Assembly: GCA_002269645.1 (NCBI GenBank)
Contig: NIVC01003337.1
Coordinates: forward strand, 39,463 to 103,462
Source of the DNA: Macrostomum lignano
Taxonomy: Eukaryota
Direction of reading: 5' to 3'
Length of the DNA: 64,000 nucleotides
Below, piece after piece: positions 7,349-60,245 of the stretch. Position 1 is the stretch's first letter, and each line of letters starts with the position of its first letter. The position numbers and the translations under genes are program-made. A model generated the notes under the pieces. The model saw only the letters and a list, made by a program, of their open reading frames with translations, had not been told where the DNA came from and did not search any database.

Positions 7349-9298
7349 CTACGAAATTCCCACCTTAGGATTTGAACAATGGCAGCAAGCTAGTGGCTTG
7401 AGACAACAGAGGGGCTGTCGGCTTCTGGAGGAAGTCCTTGTACTTCTGGTACACTCTCGTCTCGTGAACTTGAACCACTTGGCAGCTTGGACTTTAATCA
7501 TGACACGGCGTGAGAAAACAGAGAGGCTTTTGGCTTCTGGAAGAAATCCTTGTACTTCTGGTACACTCTCGTCTCGTGAACTTGAACCACCTGGCCGCTT
7601 GGACTTGAACCATGACCCGGCTTGAGACAACAGAGAGGCTTTCGGCTTCTGGAAAAAATCCTTGTACTTCTGGTACACTCTCGTCTCGTTCTGCAGCAGC
7701 ACCTGCATCAGTTCATCTTTCTTCAAGTTCTCTGCACGGGCCGCGAGCTCTCTAATATCCCTAAGCTGCTGGATTCGCTCAGGGTATCCTTCACGCTTAT
7801 TCATGTCCTCCGCCTCAATCAGCTTGTCAATGTAGTCCACCTCACTCAGCGGATCAGGCTTCAGAGCAATCTCATGCAGTCTCTTAAGGCACTTTGTGCT
7901 CTCGCTAATCAGCTGCATCACTTTGGCTTCGGTTTGCAGATAATCTCCGTAGACTTTTTCCGCTAACTGGCTGGCTGTCAACAGCTTGCCCTGCGCATCG
8001 GTGTAGCGGTTCTTCAACTCTTCCGAAGTCTTCGTGACGGATTCCCGTACAAAAATGAACCGATTTTGCCTGTTCTTGTGCACCGACCACACACAGTGCC
8101 CTGGGCATTCGCGGCATATGCCATCAGACATTGCAACACAGCCTGCTTTGTCACTGTCTACCGGAATAGCACAAGGATAGTGACAGGTTCGGTTGCAGTT
8201 CAGACAGTTTGTGATGTAATGTCCTGGAGGAATAGCTTCTTCTACCCTATTTTCCTCAACAACCGTGTAGGTGAAGTTCTTGTTCCGGTTCAGATCTTTT
8301 CGATGACTTTTTATTACATCTATCTCACGCTCCAGTTGGTTAAGAGCGCTGATACCTAAGTGGATCTCGTTCTTGATGGCAATTAAGTGAGTTTGCAATC
8401 TCTGACGCTCAGTCAGAACGTCTTTTGTTAGAGTCAGACTTTTGGCCTCTGTCTTGTTTAACTGAGAAAAGAAGTCCTTAAAGCTCTGCATTCCCACGTC
8501 CCAGAACATCTTGTTGAACATCTGGCTCTTGGAATCCATTTCGTGGCTTTTGGCAAACACAGCCGAATTGTTGAACTTGGTGTGCGACTTGTACACGATA
8601 CCCGCTTCTTTGAGCGACTCCAGTACCGGTGGGACGCTAGCGTCGGCGGAAGTGATCATGACAAAGATGTTATCGCCAATGTCCTTCCCAAAGAGGGAAA
8701 TTATCGCGTCATAGACGGATCGCTGGGTCGATGTCAGCCTGGTGACACCAGACGGCACCACGAAGCCCACAGCGTCCAGATGATCGACGCCAGCTGGAGA
8801 AGAAAAGAACTCCCGAATTCGAGCTACAATCTTCTTCTTCTTCTTCTTCTTCACGATGCCGCCAGTGTCACCGAACCCAGGAGTGTCCAACAGCGTCAGA
8901 GTGAATGGCTGCTGGCAGCCCTCGCGGTGATGAAATGTATAGGAGGTGACCCACTGTGTCTGGCTTTTTGAATGAGACTTCTGCTGGCTTTTTTCCTTGG
9001 AATCGGGGCTAATACTGAAGCGATAATTGTCTTCGAACTTCAGTCCAAAGTTGTAGTTGACCATTGAATTAATCAGCGACCCAGTTTCACCAACCATCAT
9101 GATCACCTTCTCTTCAACAGCTGAAGTTGGATCTTTGCGACCGAGCTCCATTTTCCGAACCTGGTATTTCTCATCGCATGCTGTCTGGTCCATTTGCAGT
9201 TCGTACTCAACTGGCTCTGCATCGCTGAGCTTCCGCGAAGAAAGCAGCAATTCATATTTTAGTTTATCCACAGAATTTGGCTTGACTTTTTGACTCAT
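7349..9298 (-). CDS. TRAFAC-class (septin/AIG1-like) GTPase-domain protein with coiled coil and Cys-rich domain; Walker A deleted
   Basis: 649-aa ORF: VGETGS-LINSMVN (GKS/T missing), LLDTPGFGDT (G3), ITSAD (G4-like), KFNNSAVF, and CLNCNRTCHYPC..C..CRECPGHCVWSVH. It is collinear with the C-terminal half of the 54646 gene. The ATG has an in-frame stop upstream and a 3' splice acceptor 13 nt upstream. Confidence 0.85.
   Translation of the reverse strand: MSQKVKPNSVDKLKYELLLSSRKLSDAEPVEYELQMDQTACDEKYQVRKMELGRKDPTSAVEEKVIMMVGETGSLINSMVNYNFGLKFEDNYRFSISPDSKEKSQQKSHSKSQTQWVTSYTFHHREGCQQPFTLTLLDTPGFGDTGGIVKKKKKKKIVARIREFFSSPAGVDHLDAVGFVVPSGVTRLTSTQRSVYDAIISLFGKDIGDNIFVMITSADASVPPVLESLKEAGIVYKSHTKFNNSAVFAKSHEMDSKSQMFNKMFWDVGMQSFKDFFSQLNKTEAKSLTLTKDVLTERQRLQTHLIAIKNEIHLGISALNQLEREIDVIKSHRKDLNRNKNFTYTVVEENRVEEAIPPGHYITNCLNCNRTCHYPCAIPVDSDKAGCVAMSDGICRECPGHCVWSVHKNRQNRFIFVRESVTKTSEELKNRYTDAQGKLLTASQLAEKVYGDYLQTEAKVMQLISESTKCLKRLHEIALKPDPLSEVDYIDKLIEAEDMNKREGYPERIQQLRDIRELAARAENLKKDELMQVLLQNETRVYQKYKDFFQKPKASLLSQAGSWFKSKRPGGSSSRDESVPEVQGFLPEAKSLSVFSRRVMIKVQAAKWFKFTRRECTRSTRTSSRSRQPLCCLKPLACCHCSNPKVGIS
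7392..7689. repeat. 112-bp unit in about 3 tandem copies inside the 3' end of the GTPase ORF
   Basis: The motif cttgtacttctggtacactctcgtctcg recurs three times with period 112 (ORF-track starts 7398 and 7622 are 224 apart). Confidence 0.9.
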
Positions 9299-9649
9299 TG
9301 TGACTGTCTACCTGAAGTGAGAAACGCATTTGTCAATTTTTCTTACAATTTACTTCGTAACTCATGCTATTAAATTATGTTACGTACGGCAAAGCCGTTC
9401 TATATTTTTTTAGGTCATCGGGGATATGCCGATTTTTTTGTAGCCAACTGGGCCAAGAAGAGGCAAAGGGAAGCGAACGAAACGAAACGAAATGGGTGAG
9501 CGAGAAACGGTTGCATCAATCTTTTAAGCAAATTTCTTGACGTCATGTCAAAATAAAGAAAGGATGTAAAAGCAATCAACACCACAAAAATTCGAGCCGA
9601 GTTGCCCACACAGCCGAGCAAAGCACATGAATGAAATTCTGTCTCTGTA

Positions 9650-10290
9650 TTGGGGCTGTCTATGAGTTGGGGGCTGTCTTTGAGTTGGGGGTTGTCTATG
9701 AGTTGGGGGCTGTCTTTGAGTTGAGGGCTGTCTATGAGTTGGGGGCTGTCTATGAGTTGGGGGTTGTCTATGAGTTGGGGGCTGTCTATGAGTTGAGGGC
9801 TGTCTATGAGTTGGGGGCTGTCTATGAGTTGGGGGCTGTCTATGAGTTGGGGGTTGTCTCTGAGTTGGGGGCTGACTATGAGTTGGGGGCTGTAAATGAG
9901 TTGGGGGCTGTCTATGAGTTGGGGGTTGTCTAAGAGTTGGGGGCTGTCTATGATTTGGGGTTTGTCTATGAGTTGAGGGCTGTCTATGAGTTGGGGGCTG
10001 TCTATGAGTTGGGGGCTGTCTATGAGTTGGGGGCTGTCTATGTGTTGGGGGCTGTCTATGAGTTGGGGGTTGTCTATGAGTTGGGGCTGTCTTTAAGTTG
10101 GAGGCTGTCTATGAGTTGAGGGCTGTCTATGAGTTGGGGGCTGCCTATGAGTTGGGGGTTGTCTATGAGTTGGGGGCTGCCTATGAGTTGGGGGTTGTCT
10201 ATGAGTTGGGGCTGTCTTTAAGTTGGAGGCTGTCTATGAGTTGAGGGCTTTCTATGAGTTGGGGGTTGTCTATGAGTTGAGGGCTGTTTA
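9650..10290. repeat. 18-bp minisatellite (GAGTTGGGGGCTGTCTAT)n
   Basis: About 35 directly visible tandem copies with point variants. Confidence 0.97.
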
Positions 10291-21785: not shown

Positions 21786-24700
21786 CTACACGGCAGCCCT
21801 GGCCAGGGCGGCTTTGCCAGCCTCGTCGCCAAAGATGTCGCTCAGCTGCTTCTTGTAGGCGTCAATGTTCCGCTGCATCACCTCCACGCAGGGTCCGAGC
21901 AGGCGCTCAAAGTCGGACACGTGCAGCACGCAGACCTTCGTGTGGCCAACGGCGTAGCAGCTGGCGGCGCGCGGCTCCTTGGTGATGAGCGCCAGCTCGC
22001 CAAAATAATCGCCTTTGCCGAGCAGGTTCACCTGCGGGTGGCAGCGGGGTGTCGGTTTGCAAATCAGGCCAGCTATGCTTACCCCTCCTGGCCTCTGATT
22101 GCAGGTGTCAAAATGTGTGTATCTGTGTGCCAATGCCGAAATCCCAGACAGAGAAAAACCCTGCCACTAATTGCTTTTGAGCATGATTAAATTGGAAACC
22201 CAATCCAGACCCAATTACCACCCTCAGCCTCACCTGCGTCTTCATCCCAGCCTTATCTGCATCTCCATCCCAGCCTCACCTGCATCTGCATCCCAGCTTT
22301 ACCTGCATCTGCATCCCAGCTTTACCTGCATCTGAATCCCAGCCTCACCTGCATCTCCATCCCAGCTTTACCTGCATCTGCATCCCAGCTTTACCTGCAT
22401 CAGCATCTCCATCCCAGCCTTACCTGCATCTGCATGCCAGCCTCACCTGCATCTGAATCCCAGCTTTACCTGCATCTGCATCCCAGCTTCACCTGCATCT
22501 CCATCCCAGCCTTATCTGCATCTCCATCCCAGCTTTACCTGCATCTGCATCCCAGCCTTACCTGCATCTGCATCCCAGCTTTACCTGCATCTGCATCCCA
22601 GCCTCACCTGCATCCCAGCTTTACCTGCATCTCCGTCCCAGCCTTACCTGCATCTGCATCCCAGCCTCACCTGCATCTCCATCCCAGCCTCACCTGATCT
22701 CCATCCCAGCCTCACCTGCATCTCCATCCCAGCTTTACCTGCATCTGCATCCCAGCCTTACCTGCATCTGCATCCCAGCCTTACCTGCATCTCCATCCCA
22801 ACCTCACATGCATCTGAATCCCAGCTTTACCTGCATCTCCATCCCAGCCTCATCTGCATCTCCATCCCAGCCTCACCTGCATCTCCATCCCAGCCTCATC
22901 TGATCTCCATTCCAGCCTCACCTGCATCTCCAGGCCATTGTCGGAGTTGCGCCGCATCACCTTGACCTCGCCCTCCTCCACAAAGAACATCTCGTTGCCA
23001 ATCTCGCCCTGGTGCAGGATGGGCTCGCCATCCGAGAACTCCCGCTCCTTCAGCGCGTCCGCCACATTCTGCCGCTCGTACTGGGTGAGCTCCGCCAGCA
23101 GGTGCACCGAGGACAGGAAGGCCTCGTACTTCTTGCGGTGCTTGAAGGCGGCCATGAGCACCTGCGACAGATGGGAGGCCGGGCGGACCCGTGTACTTTT
23201 AGCCTTTCAACCATTTCAGCCTGTAGAGAGTGAAGAGTGCTCAGCTGCACTCATTATCCACATCTCTCAGCTTATCTAAATAAGCCACTCCCAGCAACAC
23301 AACAATGAAAGATGCGGACAAAAGCAAACAGTCAATCTAGTATTTTTAATCCCATTATGCAGCAATTTGCTCCCGTGTTGAGTGGGGCAGCGGAGGCGGA
23401 TGCAGCGGTGCGCACAGACTCAATTGAGCTGCTCAATGTGAGTAGGGAGAGAAATCCCAGTGCATCCAGCCACTAAGCTGCTCGTGAGATGACTCGGAGC
23501 GATTGTAATGAAGCAATCGGAGGTATTAGGAGTGAAAATATATTTCTTAGCAACTTGTATTGCTTCTCTTGCCGTCAGCCTGCCGTCAGTCTACCTGTCT
23601 GGCTGCCTACCTGTCTGGCTTGTCTACCTGTTTGGCTGCCTACCTGTCTGGCTTGTCTACCTGTCTGGCTGTCTACCTGTCTGGCTGCCTACCTGTCCGG
23701 CTTGTCTAACTGTCTGGCTTGTCTACCTGTTTGGCTGCCTACCTGTTTGGCTTGTCTACCTGTCTGGCTTGTCTACCTGTCTGGCTGCCTACCTGTTTGG
23801 CTTGTCTACCTGTCTGGCTTGTCTACCTGTCTGGCTGCCTACCTGTCTGGCTTGTCTACCTGTCTGGCTTGTCTACCTGTTTGGCTGCCTACCTGTCTGG
23901 CTTGTCTACCTGTCTGGCTGTCTACCTGTCTGGCTGTCTACCTGTCTGGCTGCCTACCTGTCCGGCTTGTCTAACTGTCTGGCTTGTCTACCTGTTTGGC
24001 TGCCTACCTGTTTGGCTTGTCTACCTGTCTGGCTTGTCTACCTGTCTGGCTGCCTACCTGTCTGGCTTGTCTACCTGTCTGGCTTGTCTACCTGTTTGGC
24101 TGCCTACCTGTCTGGCTTGTCTACCTGTCTGGCTGTCTACCTGTCTGGCTGCCTACCTGTCCGGCTTGTCTAACTGTCTGGCTTGTCTACCTGTTTGGCT
24201 GCCTACCTGTTTGGCTTGTCTACCTGTCTGGCTTGTCTACCTGTCTGGCTGCCTACCTGTCTGGCTTGTCTACCTGTCTGGCTTGTCTACTTGTCTGGCT
24301 GTCTACTTGTCTGCCTGTCTGGCTTGTCTGCCTGACTGCCTGTCTACCTATCTGCCTACCTGTTTATTAGCCTTAATTCTTCCACTTCTACCAAGTCGCT
24401 ACCCGAGTCAGCCAAGCGAGCCCCACCTTCTGCTGGAAGGTCTCCATGTCCAGCGACCAGAGCACGCCGTCAGTCTTGGCGATGACCGTGGCAGCCCTGG
24501 GGCAGTAGTACATAAGCGCCAGCTCGCCAAAGGAGCCCTCGTGATTGTAGGTGAGCACATGCCGGCTCTCGGAGCTCGCCTTGTCCCTCACAAAAGCCTC
24601 AAACACGCCGCGCTCGATCACATAGAAATTGTCGCCCTCGCCGTCTTGCTCGATGATGACCTCGCCGGCCGTCACCGGCTTCTCCTCCATGGCGTCGATC

Positions 24701-25161
24701 ACGTGACCCAGGCCGACCCGGTCCAGGCTGCGGAACAGCAGGATGTGCTTGACGGTCTCCATCAGCCGGCGCCGCTGCTCGTCGGACTTCGGCACCACCC
24801 GGCGCTGGTAGGTGGCCTCGTGCTTCTCCGGGTCGAAGGAGGGCGCCGCCACGCTCACCCGGCGCCGGCTGCAGGCGCCGCAGACGCGGGCAGCGGCAGC
24901 CGAGTCGGGCAGGGCGGCCAAATCGTCGTCGTCGTCAATTTCAGCGCCGGAGTCCTCGCGGCGCAGTTGGCGCTCGGCGGAGTCGGAGGAGGCGACGGCA
25001 GCGGCGGCTGGGCCGGCGGCCTCGGAGGACTGACCGAGGTCGAGCCGCTGGAAGTAGGCGGAGGCGAACTGGACCAGATTGGCCGGCTGGGCCCGCAGCA
25101 CCGCCACGGTGAAGTCCTGGAGCAGCTCGGTCAGGCCGTCTGGCACGGTGAATGACGACAT
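21786..25161 (-). CDS. PRKAR2: cAMP-dependent protein kinase type II regulatory subunit (3 exons, ~406 aa)
   Basis: Exons 25161-24427, 23161-22922 and 22031-21786, all phase 0 with GT-AG ends. D/D domain ([31 protein letters not shown]), RRVSV substrate-type inhibitor site (type II), and two cNMP-binding cassettes ([16 protein letters not shown]; [16 protein letters not shown]). Confidence 0.96.
22225..22930 (-). repeat. ~23-bp intronic tandem repeat made of the exon 2/intron 2 junction (GAGATGCAG|GTGAGGCTGGGAT)
   Basis: The plus-strand unit catcccagcctcacctgcatctc (variants cagctttacctgc, cagccttacctgc) continues without a break into the last codons of PKA-R exon 2. Confidence 0.93.
23580..24365. 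repeat. 16/17-bp intronic minisatellite (CTACCTGTCTGGCTTGT / CTACCTGTCTGGCTGC)n in PKA-R intron 1
   Basis: Directly visible tandem array; it explains the repetitive plus-strand ORFs 23489-25155. Confidence 0.95.
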
Positions 25162-38957: not shown

Positions 38958-39214
38958 TGTCGCTCGCACCTGAGGTCAGGAAAGTACACTCGCTGATAAA
39001 GTTTCAGTTCTACTTGTACTTGTACAGAAGTAGCTACTTCTATTGGTGTCCAGGGCTCTTGAAAAATTTGCGCTCTGAATTTTAATGAGCGAGTTATGAG
39101 GTAGATTCCAATCTTATTTCATGCAGAAAAGTCTACAGGGAATGTTGCTCAAATCTAAGACAAGCAAAAAGAAAATGATAGCATAAAGTAATAAGTAACA
39201 CTAGCAAAGAACAG

Positions 39215-40806
39215 GAACACCCAGCCATGGACAGGAACACCCAGTCATGGACAGGAACACTCAGCCATGGACAGGAACACTCAGCCATGGACAGGAATAC
39301 CCAGCCATGTACAGGAACACTCAGCCATGAACAGGAACACTCAGCCATGGACAGGAATACCCAGCCATGTACAGGAACACTCAGCCATGGACAGGAATAC
39401 CCAGCCATGGACAGGAACACTCAGCCATGAACAGGAATACCCAGCCATGGACAGGAACACTCAGCCATGGACAGGAATACCCAGCCATGGACAGGAACAC
39501 TCAGCCATGGACAGGAACACCCAGCCATGGACAGGAACACTCAGCCATGGACAGGAATACCCAGCCATGGACAGGAACACCCAGTCATGAACAGGAACAA
39601 CCAGCCATGGACAGGAACACCCAGCCATGAACAGGAATACCCAGCCATGGACAGGAATACCCAGCCATGGACAGGAATACCCAGCCATGGACAGGAACAC
39701 CCAGTCATGAACAGGAACAACCAGCCATGGACAGGAACAACCAGCCATGGACAGGAATACCCAGCCATGGACAGGAACACCCAGTGATGAACAGGAACAA
39801 CCAGCCATGGACAGGAATACCCAGCCATGAACAGGAATACCCAGCCATGGACAGGAATACCCAGCCATGGACAGGAACACCCAGCCATGGACAGGAACAC
39901 CCAGTCATGAACAGGAACACTCAGCCATGGACAGGAATACCCAGCCATGGACAGGAACACCCAGTCATGAACAGGAACAACCAGCCATGGACAGGAACAC
40001 CCAGCCATGAACAGGAATACCCAGCCATGGACAGGAATACCCAGCCATGGACAGGAATACCCAGCCATGTACAGGAACACCCAGTCATGAACAGGAACAA
40101 CCAGCCATGGACAGGAACAACCAGCCATGGACAGGAATACCCAGCCATGGACAGGAACACCCAGTCATGAACAGGAACAACCAGCCATGGACAGGAACAT
40201 CCAGCTATGGATAAGAACACCCAGTCATGGACAGGAACACCCAGTCATGGACAGGAATACCCAGCCATGGACAGGAACACCCAGCCATGGACAGGAACAC
40301 TCAGCCATGGACAGGAATACCCAGCCATGGACAGGAACACCCAGTGATGAACAGGAACAACCAGCCATGGACAGGAATACCCAGCCATGAACAGGAATAC
40401 CCAGCCATGGACAGGAATACCCAGCCATGGACAGGAATACCCAGCCATGGACAGGAACACCCAGTCATGAACAGGAACAACCAGCCATGGACAGGAACAA
40501 CCAGCCATGGACAGGAATACCCAGCCATGGACAGGAACACCCAGTCATGAACAGGAACAACCAGCCATGGACAGGAACATCCAGCTATGGATAAGAACAC
40601 CCAGTCATGGACAGGAATACCCAGTCAGGGACAGGAACACCCAGTCATGGACAGGAACACCCAGTCATGGACAGGAATACCCAGCCATGGACAGGAACAC
40701 CCAGCCATGGACAGGAACACCCAGATATGGACAGGAATACCCAGCCATAGACAGTAACACCCAGCCATGGACAGGAACACCCAGCCATAGACAGTAACAT
40801 CCAGCC
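39215..40806. repeat. 20-bp satellite array A (CCCAGCCATGGACAGGAACA/TA)n, continuing at 46710-46745 beyond the LINE
   Basis: About 80 tandem units, with a 380-bp higher-order duplication (marker aacatccagctatggataag at ~40196 and ~40576). Confidence 0.97.
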
Positions 40807-41267: not shown

Positions 41268-42830
41268 GTGGAGCGGCCGGGTGGGTACCGCGCCCCTTTG
41301 AGGGTAGCCCACCAACCTTTTATCATGGCCTTCGAGCCGACTATGGATAAACAAGCTATTTCTAGGGACGGGGACCCTTCTAAACCCCAACCTCAGTCCG
41401 AAGGACCGGCCGGTCCTGCTGGCAGATCCCAACCGACTGATTCAACTGTGGCAAAGGAAGGACCGGCTGGCTCTGCTGGCAGATCCGACCAGAGCTACCA
41501 AACTCAAAATACCCTAAGACCTGCCAGCTCCGCTGGTGGATCTAAGGGAACCGCGAGCTCTGAGCCTAAAGGACCGGCCAAATCTGGCAGATCCGATGAA
41601 GCTCAGCGGGCTCGGCTTGAGCGCAAACGCGCTAAACAACGCGCCAAAAGGCAGGCCAAGAAGGGAGCTGCGGGGGCCAAAGCGGCGGCGTCCACCATGG
41701 ATGCTGAAGCGACTGGAGTCCCAAGGCAACCAGGCGGGCCGGCCGGTGGAAGCTCCAGTAGTTCAGCGGCGGCGCTCCCTGGAGCTGCTGCCGCGGCTGC
41801 TGAGGCCGAAACCACGGCGCAACAAATGGCCACTGCCAACAAGGAGGTTCCTTCGGGAGCTACCTTTGCGGCGAAGGCCAAGGCCAAAATCCCGGGAGTG
41901 ATCATCCAAGGTCGCGACCAGGACTGGACCACTGATCAGCTTCAAAAAGTGTGGAGTGCTGTTGACTCCTATCTGATTGAGCTGACTGTCGAGGAGGGAA
42001 TCTCCATCGGCGTTGAGCGGATGGTGCTGCGAAGCACATTCGTTCTTATTGCTCCTAGCAGCGAGGAGGACGCTCGGCGGCTGCTCCAGCGGCTACCGAC
42101 GGTCTCCTTGGATGCTGACCTTGGCGGAGCTCTTTTTCTTCGTGAGGGCCAGCGTCCAAAGACGATACCCTATGTGGTTTTCGTCCCTGCTAAGAGCACC
42201 GCAGCTGGACCAGACGTTATTCGCCGGGTCCTACTGCGTCTGAACCCCGACCTCCCTGCTAGTGGACTGGTGTATCACCGTAAAGTCCGCAGGGGGGAGA
42301 CGGGCAACTCAATTGTCCTCGGCCTTTCCAGCACTTGGGCGAGTCGGTACCCTAATGGATCCTCTTTCCAGCTGGGTGCCCTCAAGCTCAAGTTGCACCG
42401 AGGAAAGTCGGCCAAAGGGAAGGCTACTGCCAACCCCGGCATCTCCGGCAAGAGCGGGGCGCAGTCTAAGGCCCAAGGAAAGGCGCAAGCCGATCCCAAA
42501 GCCAAAGCTGCATCTCGCCCCTCTGCTAGCAGCAGTTCGGCGACCGCGGTAACGGCTCCGGCCAAGCCCCGGGAACCAAACCTGCCAGTCGGAGAAGGAG
42601 TTGAGGACGAGGCCGGGTCTTCGGAATCCGAGCTCTCCTCGGCCACCTTGGTGGGGTCTGAAGGTAAAGATGCAGGTGAGGAAGCTTCCTCCATCCTGTC
42701 ATCGGAGCCTGAGGACTCTGCTGGGGGGGCCGGTGGGGGTGAGGAGGCCATGGACGTCGACCAACTCCCATCTCCCAGTCAAGCCCCAGCGGCCTGGGAT
42801 GAGGACGATCTGTTGTCCAAGTCTCCTTGA
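41268..42830 (+). CDS. LINE ORF1 (gag-like nucleic-acid-binding protein); first ATG at 41325
   Basis: 520-aa ORF upstream of ORF2, with low-complexity basic/Ala-rich termini around a central globular domain. Position and composition are typical of ORF1. Confidence 0.8.
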   Translation: MERPGGYRAPLRVAHQPFIMAFEPTMDKQAISRDGDPSKPQPQSEGPAGPAGRSQPTDSTVAKEGPAGSAGRSDQSYQTQNTLRPASSAGGSKGTASSEPKGPAKSGRSDEAQRARLERKRAKQRAKRQAKKGAAGAKAAASTMDAEATGVPRQPGGPAGGSSSSSAAALPGAAAAAAEAETTAQQMATANKEVPSGATFAAKAKAKIPGVIIQGRDQDWTTDQLQKVWSAVDSYLIELTVEEGISIGVERMVLRSTFVLIAPSSEEDARRLLQRLPTVSLDADLGGALFLREGQRPKTIPYVVFVPAKSTAAGPDVIRRVLLRLNPDLPASGLVYHRKVRRGETGNSIVLGLSSTWASRYPNGSSFQLGALKLKLHRGKSAKGKATANPGISGKSGAQSKAQGKAQADPKAKAASRPSASSSSATAVTAPAKPREPNLPVGEGVEDEAGSSESELSSATLVGSEGKDAGEEASSILSSEPEDSAGGAGGGEEAMDVDQLPSPSQAPAAWDEDDLLSKSP

Positions 42831-42869
42831 TGGCCCTGGGCTCTAGCCAGATATTGCATTTAATACAGT

Positions 42870-45800
42870 ATGACTAAGCTCCACGCTGCCAAAGGAGCGA
42901 CATTCTGTCTGCAAATAAATTTACAGCATTGCGTATCTGCGTCAGTTAATCTGATGAAGATTGCTGAGCTGTACAGGCCAGGCCTCATCCTGATCCAGGA
43001 ACCCTGGATGCGCAACGGTAAGTTGCCCAACATTCCCTCTGGCTACTCTGATTTTTATGTGTGTGGCCCGGGGAACAGCCGCCCTAGAGCGGCTATCCTC
43101 GCTGCTAGCCATCTCCAGGCTTGGCTGAGGACTGATCTCTCTGATGGAGACCTTTGCGTCATCCAATCTAATCATTTCTCTCCGCGTACGTGTCTTGTTG
43201 CCTCGGTTTATATCCCAGGCGACAGAGACCCTGCTCCCGAGAGTTTACTGCGCCTTGCGCAGTACTGCGAGTCCCAGAACGCTGAGCTGTGCTTAGGGGG
43301 CGACCTCAACGCGCACCACAAGCACTGGGGCAGCAAAGATACCAACACTAGAGGAGAGGAGCTTCTGGCCCTCATCTCTAACACAAACCTCATGCTCTGC
43401 AACCGCGGCAGCACTCCTACCTTTAATAATGGCAGATGGACCGAGGTCCTCGACGCCACACTCGTTACCCCAAGACTCTTTGACAGAGTCAAGGAGTGGA
43501 GAGTCTGGTCTGAGGAGCCCTCCCTGTCTGACCACTGCTTTATCGCCTTTAATATCGCGGACACTAAAACCCAGTCTCCGATCACTTGGAGACGCAATAT
43601 CCGCAACACTGATTGGGCGGCCTACAAGGCTGCCCTTGATCTGCACCTGCAGGAACTCACGGACTTACGTCCGATTGAGACCTGCGAGGATGTGGATCAT
43701 ATGGCTGAGACGCTGACAGGTTGCATTATTGCAGCCTACGAAGCGGCTTGTCCTGCTCGCGCCTACAGAGGCAAGACCTCGGCGCCGTGGTGGAACCCGG
43801 AGCTGGGGAAACTCAGGCGGAAGGCCAAAAGCCTTCATCGCCGTGCCATGAAGACCGGAAACCCGGAGGACATGGAGCTTTTCCGGCAAGCCTCCCGCAA
43901 TTTCAAATCTGAAGTGCGCAAGGCCAAGGAATGTAAGTGGCGCCAATTCTGCAATGAATTGGATCAAGACAGACCTACTTCTAGGCTTGTCAAGGCCCTT
44001 ACAATGGACAAAATGTCCAAATTAGCCATGATCAAAAAAGATGATGGCTCTCTTACTAAAGACCCTGAAGAAGTGCTTCAGCATATGCTTAGCACATTCT
44101 TCCCGAGGGTACCTACTGCTAGACCGGAGCCCAACCATTCGATGGATGGAGCCACCCTAGCGGCGGGCATTGTCACTGAAGACCTAATCGCTCGTGCGGT
44201 CAGAACCTTCAAACCCTTCAAATCTCCTGGACCTGATGGTATCTACCCTGTTCTCCTTCGTGAAGCAGCCAAGATACCCTCGTTCCTGAGACTCACCCGC
44301 AATCTTATGCGGGCCTCTATCCAGCTGGGATACGTTCCCAAAAGCTGGACTGAAGCTCGAGTAGTCTTTATTCCCAAACCTGGGAAGGGTGACTACCAAA
44401 GCGTCAAGGCCTTCCGGCCAATTAGCTTAACGTCAGCAATGCTTAAGCTCACTGAGAGGCTTATTCTCTGGCGGCTGCTCTCCTGCGAGCTGACAGCGAT
44501 GCCCCTCAGCAATAATCAGCACGCCTTCCGTACCGGGAGGTCGACTGACAGCGCCCTGCATGCGATTGTCGAAAAGATTGAACGGGCGGTACTGGGTGAC
44601 GGTTACGCCCTGGCTCTCTTTCTTGACATTGTTGGCGCCTTCGACAACGTTATCTTTGAAGCGTTTCAGAGGGCCCTTCAAAATCGCAAAGCTCATGCTA
44701 CCCTCATACGGTGGATCATGTACATGATCTCCAACCGTACGGTCACTGCCCAACTTCTTGGGCAAACTGCCTCCACCAGAGTCTGTAAGGGTGGACCCAA
44801 GGCGGAGTCCTCACCCCGACGCTCTGGAACCTGGTCATGGACGCTCTTCTGAGTGACTCCCGACCTGACCCCGTCTTCAAAGTCGGGTATGCTGATGACG
44901 TCACGGCCATTGTGGCAGGACCGTCTCCCAGCACGCTCAGGGATCTGATGCAGAGCTTTATCCGCAAAGCAGAATCCTGGGCCAATGACAATGGTTTGGA
45001 ACTCTCTGAGCCCAAAACCGTTGCCATTATGTTTACCAGCAGACTACGCTGGAACATACGTCCTCTGCAGCTCTACGGCAGAGATATTGCCTTCGCGCAC
45101 CAGACCAGATGTCTCGGGGTCACACTTGACCACCGGCTCAACTGGTCCTTCCACGTGAAAGCAAAAGCTAAGCGTGCCTCAGCCATCCTGGCCCAGCTCC
45201 GACGAGCACTTGGCACTTCTTGGGGTCTATCCCCAAAGCGGCTTTGGTGGATCTATACTTCCGTAGTTAGACCTGCCATTACGTACGCCTCTGTTGTCTG
45301 GGTTAGCGCTACCCAGGTCAAAAGCCATGCAGACCTGCTCAACACGATCCAAGGCAGAGCGTGTAGGCTCATCTGCAACGCCACCAGGTCCACGCCCTTT
45401 GCTGGCATGGGGGCCTTTCTTAATCTTCCGCCTCTTGACCTCTTCATCAGGGGTGAGGCGGCTAGAACGACGCGGCGTCTAATTGATGCCGGCGTCAAAT
45501 TCATTTACATGAGAGCACCTGCTAAGCGGAACCTTGTCCCGCATAGCGATCTGTGCCTCAACTTTCTCAACGAGTGTCAGGCCAATCGCGTCTTCACCGA
45601 TGGCATTGCCTCAACGCTCAACCTGAGACAGCGCTACTCCGTAGCTATCGACTCGCGCGATAACATCAATGACCATTGGAACCCTGGTGAGCTTCATTGC
45701 TACACCGACGGTTCTAAGCAGTCAGCCAACACCGGCTTTGGTGTTGGAATCTTTCTGAACGGGAGGGTCATCGCTACCCACGCTCAATACACTGGGGTCA

Positions 45801-46609
45801 ACTCCAGTGTTTTCCAAAATGAAGTTCTGGCCATCAGCTCCTGCACTGCAGAGCTTCTCGCCACTGGCGTTACTGGTAAGAACATCATTTTCCATTCGGA
45901 CAGCCAAGCTGCCTTGCACGCCATCAGTGGCTGCAGCACCAACTCTGCTACAGTCCTTGACTGTATCAAACTCCTCAATGTGTTGGGTTCCGCCAACAAA
46001 ATTACCCTTAAGTGGGTTCCGGGGCATGTGGGGATCCGAGGAAATGAGTTGGCTGACACCCTTGCAAAAGTTGGTGCCTCCGGCTCCTCTCTCGGCCCCG
46101 AACCTCTTGTCCCGATTCCTGGCTGTGTCATCGACTCGCGCATCAAAGCGTGGATCAGGACTCAGCACCGCTCGACTTGGGCGAACCGCACGAACTGCAG
46201 GCAATCCAGAGGCGCTGTCCCTCAGCCCTCTCACCAGCTCCGGAAGCTCCTCTTGCGCCTCTCGCGCAGAGACATCCGGGCTGCCACCATGACCCTCTCT
46301 GGTCACGGCTGCTTCTCCAGGCACCAGTACCTGCAGGGCAACGCCACCAACGCCACCTGTAGTTTCTGCAACTCAGGTGACGAAACCGCTGAGCATTTCG
46401 TCAGCATCTGTCCCGCCTTCACGCGGGCCAGACTCACTTACCTCGGGCCACACACATCTATTACTGAAGCGTGCAAACCCGAAAACTTTAATCAGCTCAT
46501 GCGCTACCTTCGGGCCACCCGCAGGGCTGAACTCTCCTTTCCAGAGAGCACCATAGCTGCTGGCGACACTGGGGGACCTCCCTGGGCGGCGCCAACCCTC
46601 CGTCCATAG
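42870..46609 (+). CDS. LINE ORF2: AP endonuclease - reverse transcriptase - RNase H - CCHC, with one -1 frameshift at ~44798
   Basis: APE (QINLQH, LIQEPW, GGDLNAHH, SDH); RT (PGPDGI, FRPISLTS, LFLDIVGAFD, YADD); RNase H (YTDGSK, HSDSQAAL, KWVPGHVGIRGNELAD); CSFC..ETAEHF..C. Adding one C in ggacccaagg restores KGGPQGGVLTPTLWNLVMD. Confidence 0.93.
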
Positions 46610-49437: not shown

Positions 49438-50584
49438 TCAGCCGCGAACGTAGAACTGCAGGCCCTGAATGCTCAGCAGAGCAGCCGGAATGGCGGGCAC
49501 GTCCATGAAGTGGCACAGGTGCAGCTGCTGGGAGAATAGCACGGCCTGGCAGTCCCCGGTGCACAGGTAGATGCAAGTAGCCAGGCTGAAGCCGCTGGCA
49601 GACCGGTAGCTGATCCGAAACGCATTCAGTTTGAGATAGGACTCGTTGCCAGGTACGAACTTGTTCGGGTCTGCAAAAAAAGTTCGTTGAAACTCAAAAC
49701 TGTAGGCTGTACGTCCATGACGTCTGGCCGTCTGACCGGTAAAGGCTTTATTTTTACAAAATATTTATCGCTCAGAAAAAATACAAAGCGAAGAGAATTT
49801 AACTTCAAGCAGCGTTCATCAGCACGTCTAGAAAAAGGATCCCAAACAGCAATCCGACGTCGGCGCGACTTTTTGATGACGTCGTTTTCTGTCGATGCAA
49901 TGCAAAAAAGTATGTATTTGTCATCGAACGTCGATAAACCTCGAGAACGCTGGTCGACGTTGTCGACATCGGATTGCTGCTGTACGGGGGTGGCTTCAAG
50001 ACGTATCATGTACGCACATATGCAACCAGCTGTACGGGGATGGCTTCAAGACGTGTCATGTACGCACATATGCAACCAGCTGTACGGGGATGGCTTCAAG
50101 ACGTGTCATGTACATGCACATCTGCAACCAAAAGCAAAGCATGCTCACGAGTGTAGTGCTGCCGGAACACCGAGTTACGAAAAGCGGATCCACATTTCTG
50201 AGTGATGTTGCCACTGCATGTTTTAAAGCAATCACTCTCACTCATTTGTATTTGACCGTAGGAGCTCCCACAGAAGCAGTGAAAACCGGTCTGAACTCCA
50301 AAGTACGGGTGACTGCCGAGAGCGCACAGGGCGCTGCACAGCTCGTGTGTCATGCTGTGGCTGGAGGCCCTGAACAGCTCTAGTTGATGAAGACCGACAC
50401 CGCCAATCTTGGTGATGTCGTAGTTCCTCTGGTCAGTCATCTGCCACAGACCGTTGATGGCGTCCAGGTAGCAGCCGACGTAGGTGAAGTTGCGGCCCCT
50501 GCCGGCGCTCGAGGCGATGCCGATGACTCGACAGGCGAGCAGCAGGCCGGCTGCCAGGAGGATGAAGCTGTTCAGACATCGCAT
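49438..50584 (-). CDS. Secreted WSC-domain + PAN/apple-like protein, copy B (intact, 222 aa)
   Basis: Exon 1 50584-50149 (436 nt, phase-1 donor gtgagc) and exon 2 49670-49438. Signal peptide MRCLNSFILLAAGLLLAC; WSC pattern YVGCY..CSALC..YFGVQ.G.HCFCG..C...CSG...CG; C-terminal C-x3-C-x2-C..F..C apple-like pattern. Confidence 0.85.
49980..50130. repeat. 50-bp unit in three tandem copies in the intron of WSC copy B
   Basis: ctgtacgggg.tggcttcaagacgt.tcatgtac starts at 49980, 50030 and 50080; copy A has a single unit. Confidence 0.92.
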
Positions 50585-51344: not shown

Positions 51345-53660
51345 AACACCCGGCCATGGACAGGAACACCCAGCCATGGACAGGAACACCCAGCCATGGA
51401 CAGGAACACCCAGCCATGGACAGGAACACCCAGCCATGGACAGAAACACCCAGCCATGGACAGAAACACCCAGCCATGGACAGAAACACCCAGCCATGGA
51501 CAGGAACACCCAGCCATGGACAGGAACACACAGTCATGGACAGGAACACTTAGCCATGGACAGGAACACCAAGCTATGGATAGAAACACTCAGCTATGGA
51601 TAGAAACACCCAGCTATGGACAGAAACACCCAGCTATGGATAGAAACACTCAGCTATGGATAGAAACACCCAGCTATGGATAGAAACACCCAGCTATGGA
51701 CAGGAACACCCAGCTATGGATAGAAACACTCAGCTATGGATAGAAACACCCAGCTATGGATAGAAACACCCAGCTATAGATAGAAACACCCAGCTATGGA
51801 CAGGAACACCCAGCCATGGACAGGAACACCCAGCTATGGACAGGAACACCCAGCTATGGACAGGAACACCCAGCTATGGACAGGAACACCCAGCTATGGA
51901 CAGGAACACCCAGCTATGGATAGAAACACCCAGCTATGGATAGAAACACTCAGCTATGGACAGGAACACCCAGCCATGGACAGGAACACCCAGCTATGGA
52001 CAGGAACACCCAGCTATGGACAGGAACACCCAGCTATGGATAGAAACACTCAGCTATGGATAGAAACACCCAGCTATGGATAGAAACACCCAGCTATGGA
52101 TAGAAACACCCAGCTATAGATAGAAACACCCAGCTATGGATAGAAACACCCAGCCATGGACAGGAACACCCAGCCATGGACAGAAACACCCAGCCATGGA
52201 CAGGAACACCCAGCTATGGACAGGAACACCCAGCTATGGACAGGAACACCCAGCCATGGACAGGAACACCCAGCTATGGACAGGAACACCCAGCCATGGA
52301 CAGGAACACCCAGCTATGGACAGGAACACCCAGCTATGGACAGGAACACCCAGCTATGGACAGGAACACCCAGCTATGGACAGGAACACCCAGCTATGGA
52401 CAGGAACACCCAGCTATGGATAGAAACACCCAGCTATGGATAGAAACACTCAGCTATGGACAGGAACACCCAGCCATGGACAGGAACACCCAGCTATGGA
52501 CAGGAACACCCAGCTATGGATAGAAACACCCAGCTATGGATAGAAACACCCAGCTATGGACAGGAACACCCAGCTATGGACAGGAACACCCAGCTATGGA
52601 TAGAAACACTCAGCTATGGATAGAAACACCCAGCTATGGATAGAAACACCCAGCTATGGATAGAAACACCCAGCTATAGATAGAAACATCCAGCTATGGA
52701 TAGAAACACCCAGCCATGGACAGAAACACCCAGCCATGGACAGGAACACCCAGCCATGGACAGGAACACCCAGCCATGGACAGGAACACCCAGCTATGGA
52801 CAGGAACACCCAGCCATGGACAGGAACACCCAGCCATGGACAGGAACACCCAGCTATGGACAGGAACACCCAGCCATGGACAGGAACACCCAGCTATGGA
52901 CAGGAACACCCAGCTATGGATAGAAACACTCAGCTATGGATAGAAACACCCAGCTATGGATAGAAACACTCAGCTATGGACAGTTACACCCAGCCATGGA
53001 CAGGAACACCCAGCTATGGACAGGAACACCCAGCTATGGATAGAAACACCCAGCTATGGATAGAAACACCCAGCTATGGACAGGAACACCCAGCTATGGA
53101 CAGGAACACCCAGCTATGGATAGAAACACTCAGCTATGGATAGAAACACCCAGCTATGGATAGAAACACCCAGCTATGGATAGAAACACCCAGCTATAGA
53201 TAGAAACACCCAGCTATGGATAGAAACACCCAGCCATGGACAGAAACACCCAGCCATGGACAGGAACACCCAGCCATGGACAGGAACACCCAGCCATGGA
53301 CAGGAACACCCAGCTATGGACAGGAACACCCAGCCATGGACAGGAACACCCAGCCATGGACAGGAACACCCAGCTATGGACAGGAACACCCAGCCATGGA
53401 CAGGAACACCCAGCCATGGACAGGAACACCCAGCTATGGACAGGAACACCCAGCCATGGACAGGAACACCCAGCCATGGACAGGAACACCCAGCTATGGA
53501 CAGGAACACCCAGCCATGGACAGGAACACCCAGCCATGGACAGGAACACCCAGCTATGGACAGGAACACCCAGCCATGGACAGGAACACCCAGCTATGGA
53601 CAGGAACACCCAGCTATGGACAGGAACACCCAGCTATGGACAGGAACACCCAGCTATGGC
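51345..53660. repeat. 20-bp satellite array B (CCCAGCYATGGAYAGRAACA)n, same family and orientation as array A
   Basis: About 115 tandem units; the variant cagctatagatag recurs at ~51776, 52116, 52676 and 53196. Confidence 0.97.
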
Positions 53661-54645: not shown

Positions 54646-57600
54646 TCACTTGGGCTCACTCGTGGCGCTCTCGCAGCGCTGCAGCATCTCGGCGATCTTG
54701 TTGCCGAACGGATCTTCGCCACGGCGAGTCTGGGCGATCATTTCGGCAGATTTTCGAGCCTCTGCTAGGTACTTGACGCGGCTCTGCCAGCCAGGCGTCT
54801 GCTCCATCTCCTGGCTGCTAATGAGGTTATCAATGTACTGCACTACGCCTAGAGGGTACTGCCGAAGTGCCAGCTGATCAAGAGCTTCAAAGCACTTGTG
54901 AATTGTCACAATGTTGTACGTGAGCTCCTGGTGCTCTGCCGAGAGTTCTTCTCTCAGAGTTTCAATCAGTTTCCGTTTAGCCTCCCGATCTTTGACGCTG
55001 AGCTCGTACTTCTCAAAGATCTCCGTCACGCTGACGATCTCCTCCTCGGTGGTGTGCACGAAGTAGTGATCCGAGCACTCGTGCTCCTTCCAGCTGCACT
55101 TTTTCGGGCACACGGAGCAATTGCCAAAGAGCGTGAAAACTCGGCACTTTTTCCTGCTTTCTGGAAGTCCCCTGGAACAGTCGTTGTGGCAGGTGTTCTC
55201 GCACACTCTGCAGCGCATCACGTAGCGACCAGGACCTGGAGTCTTCTTCACCTTTTTCGGCACCATCACTTTCCGAGTCTTGTTCATGTCGGCGTCCTTG
55301 ATCACGGCGTCCAATGTATCCACGAGGTTGAGCTGCTCTTCAAGTAGAGCCATTTTATCGAAGCACACCTGCACCTTTTCCCACATCTTCTCCTTTGAGT
55401 GCTCCAGCGTGCTGCGCTGCCTCAAAACATTTCGAGTGGTCTTCAGGGAGATCGCATCAGCTTTGCTTAGCCAATCGAACAGCTCAGAGTAGCTAAACCA
55501 GGCCTGCTCCCAATCGAGCTGGCTCGCCCGAAGAGCCATTTGATGCTTTTTCTCTTCTGCTGAACAGGCACCCTGCGGTTCCGGCTCTGAGTTGTCGGAG
55601 TAAAGCACGCCATTGTTAAACTTCAGGATTTGCTTATACGGTACATTGTGCTCGCTTAGAGCAGCCAGTGCCTGTGGCTCATTGCTGTCTGCAAATGTCA
55701 TGACCGGAAGAATTATCTTTGCGATATCCTTTCCAAACAGGGATAGAACCTGATCGAAAATGTACTTTTGTGTCGGGGTCAGTCGGTTTTGAGACGCCTT
55801 AACCACAAAGCCAACGGCGTGCAGGATGCCCGTCATTCCTGGAATGCAGGTGCTGTCTTCTCCGAGCACTCGGGCGATCTTCTTAACGACTCGCTGATCC
55901 TCTTCGAGACCCCGGGTGTCTCCGAAGCCGGGAGTATCGATGACGGTCAGCGGGCAGTCCAGGGCACTTCTGCCCGAGCTGCACCCGCCCGAGGTGTCCA
56001 CCGGATGAAGAGTATACAATGACACCTTGGACGTCTGAGAATGCGCCTGGTTAATAATTTGACTTATTCTATTTGAAGCAGTGGATTCCAACGCCGAACA
56101 TTCCGGGGCGGTTTCAGAAATCAAGCGCAGTCGAAAGTTGTCCTTGTATTCAACTTTGTAGAAGGCATTTACAAGCGCGTTGATGAATCTGGTTTTTCCT
56201 GTGCCAGTCTCGCCCACAACCAGCAGGTACTTCCCTGGACTGCTTTTGCACGCGCCAATGTCGAATGACTCAGGGCAGATGCAGTGGTCCGCAGGGCACT
56301 GGCAGCTCTCAGGCAGCTTTAGGAGTCTCATTTTGAGCTGGAAAATCTCGCCAGGAAACGCTTCGTCGCCTTCTTTCCTCACGGGCTTCGACTCGCACAT
56401 GATCTTTCGCACGTACTCGGAGCAGAGCTCCAGAGGCAGCGTTTCAAAACGGACGCTACGGGACTCAACTGAATCCCCAAACGGAGTCACTGTAGAGATC
56501 TTGGCCTTGAATTTGCTACTTGGATCGAGCTCGTGAACGTCAGTAGTGACTTCGTCAGTGAGTTTCGTGACGACAAGCTCACTCGAGTCTTTTTTGGAGG
56601 AAACGTAGATATTAATTCGGTACTGCACAGCTGGCGCAAATTCGCTCTTCACGGCCGACCATGAAAACTTGGCCCGAGTGGACTTAATTTCCTCGCATGA
56701 CAGATCCTTCGGTGGTGGCGGAATCTCCAGAGCGCACCACTGGTGTCCCTTTCTGTACTTTTTTATAATTTCGATTCGGTCCGTATTGTTGCGACCGGCT
56801 TCGCTAATTAGAGCTGCAGAAACGGTGAATTTATCGTCTGTTCTGTTTCTTTCAACAATGGACACAAGCTCGTTCACCAGTACAATGATCTTTTCATGCT
56901 CTTCAGTGTCATGCCAGGTATCCCGGCTCCGCTCCACAGTAGAGTAATTGCTTTCACCATTGAGGAATCTCTGAAGACTTTTTAAATAGAAAGATATCGT
57001 TGGAAAATTAAGCTCAACTAGAAGCTTCTGTTCAGCTGATTTTTCAAACTGCTGTTTGTCTGTGGCATCCTTGATGAGCTTGATGCCCACTGAGCTCAGT
57101 TGAGCTGCCAACGCCTGCAGAGCGATGCACTCCCTCTCTCGATTCGAAATCCAGTCAAGAAGCTGGGCGGGTCCGAACGGAGAATTGTCCCGGAAATTGG
57201 TCAACAGCTTGGTAATTTTATCGCATCCTTTATTGTGCTCTCGAGCATCTGGCAGAGTCTTCAGCAGCTTTTCCGTGTATCTGGTCTTTATCACTTCTAC
57301 CATATTCACGAACTCTGAAAGCTCTGCACGCTGCGTCTGCCACGGACTCGATGCCAGCACACGCTGCTGTGTTCCGGCCGCGCTGATGGAATCATTGAGC
57401 CTCTGAAGATAGTCGCCAGCTTCGTTCAGCTGCTCATCCGTGATCTTCCGTTTCAGCATAACTACTTTGCCTCCAAGCGTGCTCAGAGGTGTCAAGTAAG
57501 CCACCAGTGGAGTCTCGGCGCTGTCGCTTGAGAAGCTGCTCACACAGCCGAACGCCTCTCGCAAAGTCGTCGGTGGAGATTCGACATCGAAGTCACCGAA

Positions 57601-59254
57601 GTAGCGACACTTCACTCTGTCATACACACTGTCGTCAAAGTCGCTGCTGTACTTGGGCGGCGCGTCGGACTCATTGAAGGCGACTTTTAGAGCGGACACC
57701 ATCGACTCGAGACTCTCTTCCGACGCTGAGGCCTCGCCAAGCAGCTCTCTCTCCTTTTCGAACACGAGAAAGGCATTGGCTCCGAACTTGATGCCCGTCA
57801 CCACATGGGTCGCCGGGGTGTCCGCCAGCTGTTGTGGAAACTCGACGCCTCCACTTGGCTCCAAGTGCAGCTCGTCGAACCTTGTGACAATCCGGTAGGC
57901 CAGAGTGACTTCCTCAGAGTTGAGACTGGTCTTTGAGTCGTTCAGGTACCGACCAGAGCCTTCGACCTCGGTGTTGCCACACAGGAAGCCGAGCTTCAGA
58001 TCCGGACTGAGTTTGAGCAGTTTCGCCTTGTCCGAAAATGTGCACTCTTTTTCGATGCTGATAGTTCGAGTCACTTCCACTTGACTTTTGGTCATGTCGA
58101 GCGTCGCGGCTTGCGACCACAGCTTGGTCCCGGTGATGAAGCGGTCGTTTCGCGCATCGTACAGCGTGCCGAGAGCGACGGGTCGGCCCAGACAGGCAAT
58201 TCGGAGGTCTTTGTCTTTGAAGGAACCGTGGGCATCTGAACAGCAAAGTAGTGTGGAAACAAGAATGTTAAAAAGTGTGGGACTTAACACGTTTGGATCT
58301 ACCACAGGTACTTTGCTAGCTTTGGTACTGAGACATGCGGTATGTAGTGGTACGTTAAACAATCAATAAAAAGCGCTGTTGCTTCGATCGTGAAATTTTT
58401 TAAATCTCTAGCGGTGACCAAAGTGTGGGTGGCAAAAAGCAAGGACAGCAAAAGTTTCCTAGACAACCGATAGTGTCAATCGTGATATGCAGGGTGGTTC
58501 AGAAAGGCCTCCCTGGCTTTTCTGAGTACTGGGTTGATGGATTGGGCACAACCTTGACCTGCTTAAACTTTTTAATGATATTTTTACTTTAGAAGCTTGT
58601 TACTTGCTTCAATAATCTTGAAATTACACTACCGGACGTATCTGCTGTATTTCAGTTCTCTGCATGGCTTATACGTCAGTTGAGAGATTCAAAATGACGT
58701 CCTGACTTTAAGAGACTTTAAGAGGTATAGACAACTATGGGCCGTCAGGTTGAGAAGTTACTAACAGCTTTACAGCAGATTGTTACAATTGTGCTTAAAC
58801 ACAAGTCAATGCATGTAATAAAAAGCTGTGTTTAAGAAAACTGCTCTGTTTTTTTAACCGAGAGACCTTACTGGACCACTCTGTATAGCTTTATACAATG
58901 CCATTCGAGAAACAGATTAGGAGTATCGTCACAGGTACATGTAAGTCATTGGTAGTGCATTCACGAATGAGAAATGAGGTGGTGAATCAACTAAGAAGCA
59001 CTGGTCGAAAGCATTTGGCGCATGGCTAAATAGTACACAAGCAGTATTGATTTGATTTAAGAAATATCGGCAACCGCATGCATTTGGCCAGCCAGAAAGA
59101 AGCAAGAGAAAGTTCACTGTCTGCCATTTTACTTTCGGAATTATGCTAACGACTTTACGTTAGCATACGTTAGCATAACGCACTCACCAGCCGGCGGTCT
59201 CCGCTTGAACTTCTTCTTGAAGGCACTCCTAGCGGCCGAGAGCTTCTTATTCAT
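54646..59254 (-). CDS. Stonustoxin-like MACPF - FN3 - TRAFAC GTPase - coiled coil - Cys-rich fusion protein (copy B, ~1218 aa)
   Basis: Exon 1 59254-59188 (MNKKLSAARSAFKKKFKRRPPA, phase-1 donor gtgagt) and exon 2 58235-54646 (gttcag acceptor). SNTX-type motifs as in copy A; G1 GETGTGKT, G3 DTPGFGD, G4-like TFAD, KFNN; CRVCENTCHNDC..C..CSVCPKKCSWKEH. Confidence 0.9.

Positions 59255-60188: not shown

Positions 60189-60245
<57 letters not shown>

Follow-up and report, generated by a model that had tools for sequence, protein, structure and literature searches.

We analyzed a stretch of 64,000 nucleotides (nt) from Macrostomum lignano (assembly GCA_002269645.1, contig NIVC01003337.1, positions 39,463 to 103,462 of the forward strand; hereafter the window), in which domain searches and alignments recovered three homologous open reading frames (ORFs) on the minus strand. 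These are an intact gene (gene B), which joins a toxin-like pore-forming region to a GTPase, and two partial relatives, namely a copy at 35.6 kb (copy A) and an ORF at 7.3 kb; genes encoding WSC domains lie a few kb downstream of gene B and copy A. The locus is probably a birth-and-death cluster of paralogues of a widespread, uncharacterized family of leaderless animal proteins in neopolyploid M. lignano, and its pattern is best explained by ordinary duplication and decay rather than by a coordinated immune module. In the scenario that we favor, copy A would be an old tandem paralogue, whose first ~1.2 kb were homogenized with gene B and whose 3' 1.4 kb were lost. The 7.3-kb ORF would represent the remains of a third, divergent full-length paralogue, which lost its exon 1 and intron and had its nucleotide-binding loop deleted, and the two WSC genes would be paralogous copies beside the A and B toxin genes, inherited from one ancestral neighborhood.

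Architecture of gene B and its family

The longest ORF of the window is ~100% identical to the NCBI proteins BOX15_Mlig008863g1 and g2, the former of which corresponds to gene B. This gene, which is already annotated, encodes 1218 amino acids (aa) inclusive of exon 1, and is the only intact member of the family in the window. Exon 1 (59189..59254, minus strand) was located by tblastn with residues 1-22 of the protein P0001, which match at 100%; it reads MNKKLSAARSAFKKKFKRRPPA and is immediately followed by a GT donor (G|GTGAGT). Exon 2 (54646..58239, minus strand; 99.9% identical to P0001) codes for MACPF, helical and FN3 domains, an AIG1/septin-like GTPase, a Cys-rich region and a coiled coil. 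No signal peptide was detected in the gene B protein, which we take to be leaderless because exon 1 codes for a basic, non-hydrophobic N-terminus. Four Pfam models score above their cut-offs in gene B, namely MACPF_SNTX (29.5 bits, with 32.2 in copy A; cut-off 27), Stonustoxin_helical (29.0 bits, with 29.9 in copy A; cut-off 27), fn3 and AIG1 (30.5; gathering cut-off 27). The 7.3-kb ORF scores 23.2 with AIG1, i.e. under the cut-off, and the Pfam Septin model remains below its cut-off for both this ORF and gene B. The G domain of gene B has an intact P-loop (GETGTGKT) and a DTPGFGD motif; past it come a block rich in Cys and His and, at the C-terminus, a coiled-coil-like region. The domain contents that the initial annotation had assigned to the three homologs, inclusive of its pseudo-GTPase call, are borne out by the Pfam searches and the alignment of motifs. 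What gene B encodes is an intact protein with no leader, in which a pore-forming module of the stonustoxin type is fused to a P-loop GTPase module.

A phmmer comparison with stonustoxin (4wvm_A) aligned residues 51-438 of gene B at E = 1.5e-32, and both stonustoxin subunits (PDB 4wvm) are aligned with E ~1e-32. The shared part consists of the N-terminal MACPF/CDC domain and the FAT-like helical domain, over ~390-420 aligned residues (PDB 4WVM; E = 1e-32). Stonustoxin and the SNTX-like fish proteins are likewise without a signal peptide, and the fish sntx genes also form tandem arrays, which include partial genes and pseudogenes (PMC10566576). Unlike stonustoxin, which has a C-terminal PRYSPRY region, the family described here has FN3, the GTPase, the Cys-rich region and the coiled coil, and it is not known from a venom setting. 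None of the window proteins gave a Pfam match to THX (Thioredoxin_11), PRY or SPRY, the FN3 and GTPase domains taking that position; the THX domain of stonustoxin is found in the shrimp homologue. The G domain shares the GxxxxGK[ST] and DTPGFGD motifs with the AIG1/GIMAP- and septin-like TRAFAC GTPases, from which the window clade differs in its Cys/His-rich module and C-terminal coiled coil and in scoring marginally with both models; the 7.3-kb copy falls under both cut-offs and has lost the P-loop lysine. In lancelets, AIG1 genes are reported to be dispensable, to have expanded in a lineage-specific manner and to carry variable effector domains at their N-termini (PMC12373286).

Given these domains, the gene B protein most likely acts as a nucleotide-gated pore-former, which would be cytosolic or released by an unconventional route. 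From what is established for MACPF/CDC proteins and for oligomerizing immune GTPases, pore formation is probably gated or positioned by the G domain and the coiled coil as they assemble in a nucleotide-dependent manner; in such a model, GTP-dependent oligomerization of the G domain would control assembly of the MACPF pore.

An exhaustive HMMER search recovered 3896 cluster representatives at E <= 1e-3, dozens of which match over the full length, and proteins with the complete architecture occur in flatworm, shrimp, reedfish and environmental eukaryotes. Named full-length members include a shrimp protein, a reedfish protein (P0135, for which an exact-product look-up found nothing) and two further M. 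lignano proteins, P0129 (BOX15_Mlig032689g1) and P0130 (BOX15_Mlig029040g1). The latter two have the full architecture of gene B; both are intact and single-copy at their own loci (within +/-10 kb) and have no neighboring WSC gene. Fish, crustaceans, cnidarians and sponges very commonly have GTPase-only proteins of ~550 aa, whose P-loops are intact, and other N-terminal fusions to the GTPase module also occur. Modularity is, therefore, a property of the whole family, whereas the two partial copies in the window arose by truncation of full-length genes. A word-indexed protein search returned 8 hits for the full protein and missed P0129 and P0130, the latter even though it is 84% identical to the 7.3-kb ORF used as a query; we did not use such hit lists as evidence for absence and used the HMMER search instead. 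Our literature searches found no papers describing the fused SNTX-MACPF/GTPase architecture or its gene identifiers. Separately, a 1010-aa protein (P0055) from a cyanobacterial metagenome-assembled genome (MAG; Roseofilum sp.) shows 42% identity to the animal GTPase/Cys-rich module over 78% of the 7.3-kb ORF; it could have been transferred horizontally, or the MAG could be contaminated by its host.

The two partial copies

Copy A (35608..37839, minus strand; ORF 35608-37914) codes for MACPF_SNTX, the helical domain, fn3, a linker and only the P-loop segment (GETGTGKS) of the GTPase, after which a stop follows. Its protein is 77% identical overall to that of gene B, with a sharply mosaic divergence: nucleotide identity amounts to 84% in codons 1-50, 88-99% in codons 51-400, which cover the MACPF and helical domains, and 53-79% in codons 401-745, with the MACPF/helical half being ~95% identical to gene B. 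The synonymous divergence (dS) between the two rises from 0.12 in the MACPF domain through 0.59 in the helical domain to 1.7 in FN3 and is saturated in the linker and P-loop, with omega (dN/dS) ranging from 0.15 to 0.36. Since omega is low in its old part, copy A was functional and under constraint, and presumably full-length, for most of its history. The divergence profile marks copy A and gene B as a likely old pair of tandem paralogues, in which the 5' ~1.2 kb of copy A (its first 400 codons) were probably homogenized recently with gene B by gene conversion. Homology to gene B breaks off at ~35640 after the residues NQAHS, and 8 unrelated codons then precede the stop. What has been lost is the 3' 1.4 kb, comprising the greater part of the GTPase together with the Cys-rich region and the coiled coil. 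The breakpoint within the G domain is sharp, and no trace of the remainder of that domain was found downstream. At the other end, the splice acceptor (TTTTAG|AT) is kept at ~37840; no in-frame ATG was detected in the long exon upstream of the MACPF domain, and a counterpart of gene B exon 1 was not found.

In the 7.3-kb unit (7349..9322, minus strand; ORF 7349-9298) the GTPase, from which the Walker-A residues GKTT are deleted (GETGS----LINS), is followed by the Cys-rich region and the coiled coil. The ORF shows only 29% identity to the GTPase half of gene B. Its closer relative is P0130, an intact full-length MACPF-FN3-GTPase gene at another M. lignano locus (L004), whose two coding exons are split at residue 588. 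The 7.3-kb ORF is 84% identical in aa and 90% in nt to residues 598-1163 of this protein, and homology begins at the boundary of the intron and exon 2, such that the unit is exactly a solo exon 2 of a P0130-like gene with the last intron nucleotides and the acceptor retained. No counterpart of P0130 exon 1 was found anywhere in the window. A small deletion has placed a TAG directly after the acceptor in the ancestral frame, and the ATG of the ORF (9298) lies 4 codons past this TAG, where P0130 has a Ser. The internal indels are the 12-nt in-frame GKTT deletion and a 9-nt poly-K insertion. At the 3' end a 112-bp tandem repeat (7395..7689; 2.6 copies; detected by Tandem Repeats Finder (TRF), self-blastn and tblastn) covers the last 35 codons; on account of it the native stop is gone and an 83-aa out-of-frame tail has been added, with residues 1129-1163 of P0130 being found in three frames by tblastn.

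A block of ~9 kb that takes in the 7.3-kb unit and its downstream flank (825..9295, minus strand, against L004 14185-25002; blastn, 76-90% nt identity) runs collinear with the P0130 locus, inclusive of a downstream ankyrin-repeat gene. This collinearity shows that the unit is part of a segmental paralogy of its own. The initial annotation had invoked local duplication; the 7.3-kb gene did not arise in this way from its neighbors, but is a decayed remnant (exon 2 only) of a separate, divergent full-length paralogue. This segmental paralogy is older than the subgenome split. An origin of the locus as a homeologue of the recent polyploidization was found to be unsupported, because the paralogy is 10-15% diverged (dS 0.17), as against ~2% between the S, L1 and L2 subgenomes of M. 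lignano (PMC10733133). We also excluded a 5'-truncated processed retrocopy, because retention of the 3' end of the intron and of the acceptor indicates a copy made at the DNA level.

With P0009 as the outgroup, 42 derived aa changes fall in the 7.3-kb lineage, as against 13 in P0130; restricting the count to positions that distant homologues conserve gives 14 and 1 respectively. The pairwise dN/dS between the 7.3-kb ORF and P0130 is 0.44 (dS 0.17), from which we apportion an omega of ~0.66 to the 7.3-kb lineage. These ratios do not reach the value near 1 by which the initial annotation would have recognized non-functional partial copies. In the last quarter of the ORF omega is 0.27, the Cys-rich and coiled-coil parts being the least diverged. 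An exact-product look-up found no record of the 7.3-kb ORF product in the gene collection. The unit reads as a young or weakly constrained relic with accelerated protein evolution, and the ORF may have a residual role as a nucleotide-free protein.

As the P-loop is present in copy A and lacking in the 7.3-kb ORF, we considered them as two exons of a single gene, and rejected this arrangement. The stop of copy A comes ahead of any GT donor; beyond the ancestral acceptor of the 7.3-kb exon, two of the three splice phases run directly into a stop (inclusive of the TAG in the GTPase frame); and, at 29-37% identity, copy A and the 7.3-kb ORF represent different subfamilies.

A different possibility is that the partial copies underwent sub- or neofunctionalization without any participation of the WSC genes, with copy A acting as a GTPase-less pore-forming subunit that pairs with gene B by way of its homogenized MACPF/helical half, and/or the 7.3-kb ORF acting as a nucleotide-free scaffold that modulates oligomerization of full-length paralogues. 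The restriction of the conversion-like tract to the MACPF/helical region, which dimerizes, and the conserved acceptor upstream of copy A would suit such roles. So would the survival of the 7.3-kb ORF with in-frame indels and an ATG created 4 codons past the new TAG, along with the low divergence of its Cys-rich and coiled-coil parts (omega 0.27 in the last quarter). Set against these are the 14 substitutions of the 7.3-kb lineage at otherwise conserved sites, its 83-aa out-of-frame tail derived from the 112-bp repeat and the want of its exact product in the gene collection, whereas copy A would have to end in an orphan beta1/P-loop/alpha1 piece of a G domain. On balance we regard sub- or neofunctionalization as unlikely, and favor truncation and decay for both copies.

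Comparison with other contigs

Two further M. lignano contigs bear on the arrangement. The contig NIVC01002141.1 (L001) is 99.94% identical to positions 49870-64000 of the window. The contig NIVC01002895.1 (L002) shows the same order of a gene B homolog, a WSC gene and a copy A homolog at 92-98% identity, consistent with its derivation from another subgenome, and without the retrotransposon present in the window. As this contig repeats the order, the arrangement B - WSC - A is real and older than the subgenome split. The initial annotation was right in treating gene B and copy A, as well as the pair of WSC genes, as local duplicates in tandem. The subgenome copy of gene B in L002 (P0002, 10001-13787) is frameshifted and encodes 944 aa, with the Cys-rich and coiled-coil C-terminus lost. 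The frameshift may represent either decay of a duplicate or an assembly error, and fits ongoing decay after polyploidization (PMC10733133).

The repeat-rich, neopolyploid nature of this genome raises the question of whether the truncated copies are artefacts of collapsed or chimeric contigs. A reported 36% of the length of the Mlig_3_7 assembly lies in chimeric scaffolds (PMC10733133), and satellites abut the breakpoints in the window. Such an artefact is nevertheless extremely improbable, given that the independent contig L001 agrees with the window at 99.9% over 14 kb, that L002 reproduces B - WSC - A inclusive of the start of copy A, and that the 7.3-kb copy is 10% substituted relative to its source and hence no misjoined piece of it.

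The WSC genes

The two WSC genes lie on the downstream side of the toxin ORFs, WSC-B (49438-50584) at 4.1 kb from that of gene B and WSC-A (30213-32315) at 3.3 kb from that of copy A. Both copies encode a hydrophobic signal-peptide-like N-terminus followed by a WSC domain, which is recognized by Pfam with 44.7-49.9 bits (cut-off 27.8; E = 1e-11 to 4e-13). In WSC-B, exon 1 (50149..50584, minus strand; read from 50584 to 50149) carries both of these and ends in phase 1 at C|GTGAG, and the acceptor TTTTTTTGCAG at 49671 opens exon 2 (49438..49670, minus strand) in frame; the latter encodes a 76-aa C-terminal module with four Cys and the stop. The predicted product has 222 aa, and an AATAAA occurs ~170 nt downstream. 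A 50-bp repeat in 3 copies (49979-50130) occupies the intron directly past the exon 1 donor. The corresponding exons of WSC-A are found at 31879..32315 and 30213..30445 (minus strand), separated by an intron ~940 bp longer than that of WSC-B. Between the two genes the exons are 92-99% identical, and the flanks and intron 68-82%, with an omega of 0.34; exon 2 has no non-synonymous and 3 synonymous differences, and all 76 aa are the same. In WSC-A one extra T at ~32213, within exon 1, causes a frameshift directly after the signal peptide.

The 222-aa protein matches the WSC domain of Kremen-1 (PDB 5fww; E = 7e-5). It differs from Kremen in having no kringle or CUB domain, in being small and predicted to be secreted, and in possessing the extra four-Cys C-terminal module, whose fold is uncertain. 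These genes had been described as encoding WSC-PAN proteins, and their duplicated, signal-peptide-like WSC portions a few kb downstream of the toxin genes are confirmed. The PAN assignment is not, as PAN_1 scores only 10.1 bits (cut-off 21.4; E = 0.74) on the spliced protein and the exon alone yields no Pfam match. A single-sequence AlphaFold (AF2) model of exon 2 had a pLDDT of 49, too poor for comparison of folds. A word-indexed protein search, which is known to miss close paralogues, returned no relatives of the WSC exon. In the annotation stretches that we fetched, the genes called for GCA_002269645.1 include neither of the WSC genes nor copy A.

Tblastn and phmmer searches of six-frame translations detected no WSC domain within +/-10 kb of five other loci of the family, namely two in M. 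lignano (L003 and L004), one each in the shrimp Palaemon (L005) and the starfish Acanthaster (L006), and one from an environmental eukaryote (L007). Recurrence of the WSC linkage, the want of which the initial annotation had named among the findings that would refute its reading, is hence not observed at these loci; outside the window the toxin-WSC adjacency is found only in L002, the subgenome copy of the same locus. Because there is no WSC gene at the five other loci, the pairing is probably explained by one ancestral neighborhood present in two paralogous copies, and not by a recurrent functional linkage.

These data also bear on the proposal of the initial annotation that the three toxin/GTPase genes form a working set of effector, partner and decoy, with the secreted WSC(-PAN) proteins serving as glycan sensors of an innate-immune locus. 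The analogy with stonustoxin, in which two paralogous subunits pair as a heterodimer (PDB 4wvm, chains A and B), gives the idea some appeal, as do the openness of all three long ORFs, the pairwise dN/dS of <1, the in-frame indels of the 7.3-kb ORF and its length in excess of neutral expectation, the conservation of the WSC exons, and the ~95% identity to gene B kept by the MACPF/helical half of copy A. We nonetheless consider this proposal very unlikely. The 7.3-kb unit is of other origin and lies 26 kb away with unrelated genes in between, copy A has no identifiable start codon, WSC-A is frameshifted, PAN is not confirmed, and the linkage to WSC is absent from the five other family loci. The WSC genes and copy A are, moreover, missing from the called genes in the reference annotation stretches, and the toxin proteins have no signal peptide whereas the WSC proteins do, which would place them in different compartments. 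We found no positive evidence for an effector/partner/decoy set: both partial copies derive from full-length genes by truncation, and one of the WSC genes is frameshifted.

Several observations weigh against duplication and decay as a complete account of the locus. Copy A has a long open frame, a conserved acceptor and an omega of 0.15 in its old part, and may be expressed from an exon not identified here. The 7.3-kb ORF has 0 stops in 566 codons, for which simulation gives P ~0.016-0.044 with 75-100 neutral substitutions, and the lengths of its two internal indels (12 nt and 9 nt) are divisible by three, so that some constraint on this ORF, or a very recent loss of function, is likely. The single-base frameshift of WSC-A could be an assembly error. 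As regards gene B itself, GTP-gated pore formation is inferred from domain content only.

Other features of the window

The toxin and WSC genes are not tightly clustered, as a protein kinase A (PKA) regulatory-subunit gene, a long interspersed nuclear element (LINE) and several kb of satellites intervene. The PKA type II regulatory-subunit gene (21786..25161, minus strand), with exons for the RIIa dimerization and cyclic-nucleotide-monophosphate-binding (cNMP-binding) domains recognized by Pfam, sits between copy A/WSC-A and the 7.3-kb ORF and has satellite-filled introns. The ankyrin-repeat gene (1179-2, minus strand; Pfam) lies downstream of the 7.3-kb ORF. The LINE retrotransposon (41268..46609, plus strand) encodes an ORF1, an APE endonuclease with a reverse transcriptase, and an RNase H, as judged by Pfam; its three ORFs are open and nearly contiguous. 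As it is missing from the matching place in the subgenome contig L002, its insertion appears to be recent, and the element is possibly still active. On the basis of their Pfam domains these neighbors, i.e. the PKA subunit, the ankyrin gene and the LINE, provide no immune context.

Satellites with units of 13-34 bp and up to 116 copies are abundant. One 20-bp family occurs at two places flanking toxin genes, with ~116 copies between gene B and WSC-B (51345..53659; TRF, self-blastn) and ~80 copies upstream of copy A (39211..40806; TRF). Further dense arrays are located at 9652-10287, 11171-11924, 13982-14751, 18873-19248, 22225-22929, 23589-24345 and 60110-61516. Because of these dense short-period satellites, many spurious long ORFs are seen on both strands.

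Implications

Beyond the interest of the family to which gene B belongs, the locus itself adds little; it illustrates how tandem paralogy, gene conversion, truncation and decay bring about the turnover of such genes in a neopolyploid genome. It also cautions that an adjacency stemming from a single duplication should not be taken as a functional module. A more speculative reading, which borrows from the stonustoxin heterodimer and to which we give little credence, would have copy A kept as a GTPase-less pore-forming subunit, with its MACPF/helical dimerization half actively homogenized with gene B by gene conversion, and forming a stonustoxin-like heterodimer with gene B, with one GTPase switch per pair; the 7.3-kb protein, which has no P-loop, would cap oligomers of its own full-length paralogue independently of nucleotide. 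If true, the regulation of a GTP-gated pore-former would here be split naturally among separate proteins. The wider interest lies in the family itself, which extends from flatworms and crustaceans to fish and fuses a pore-forming domain of the stonefish-toxin type to a GTPase. If GTP binding gates pore assembly in these proteins, they would represent a new kind of regulated pore-former, possibly functioning in cell-autonomous defence.

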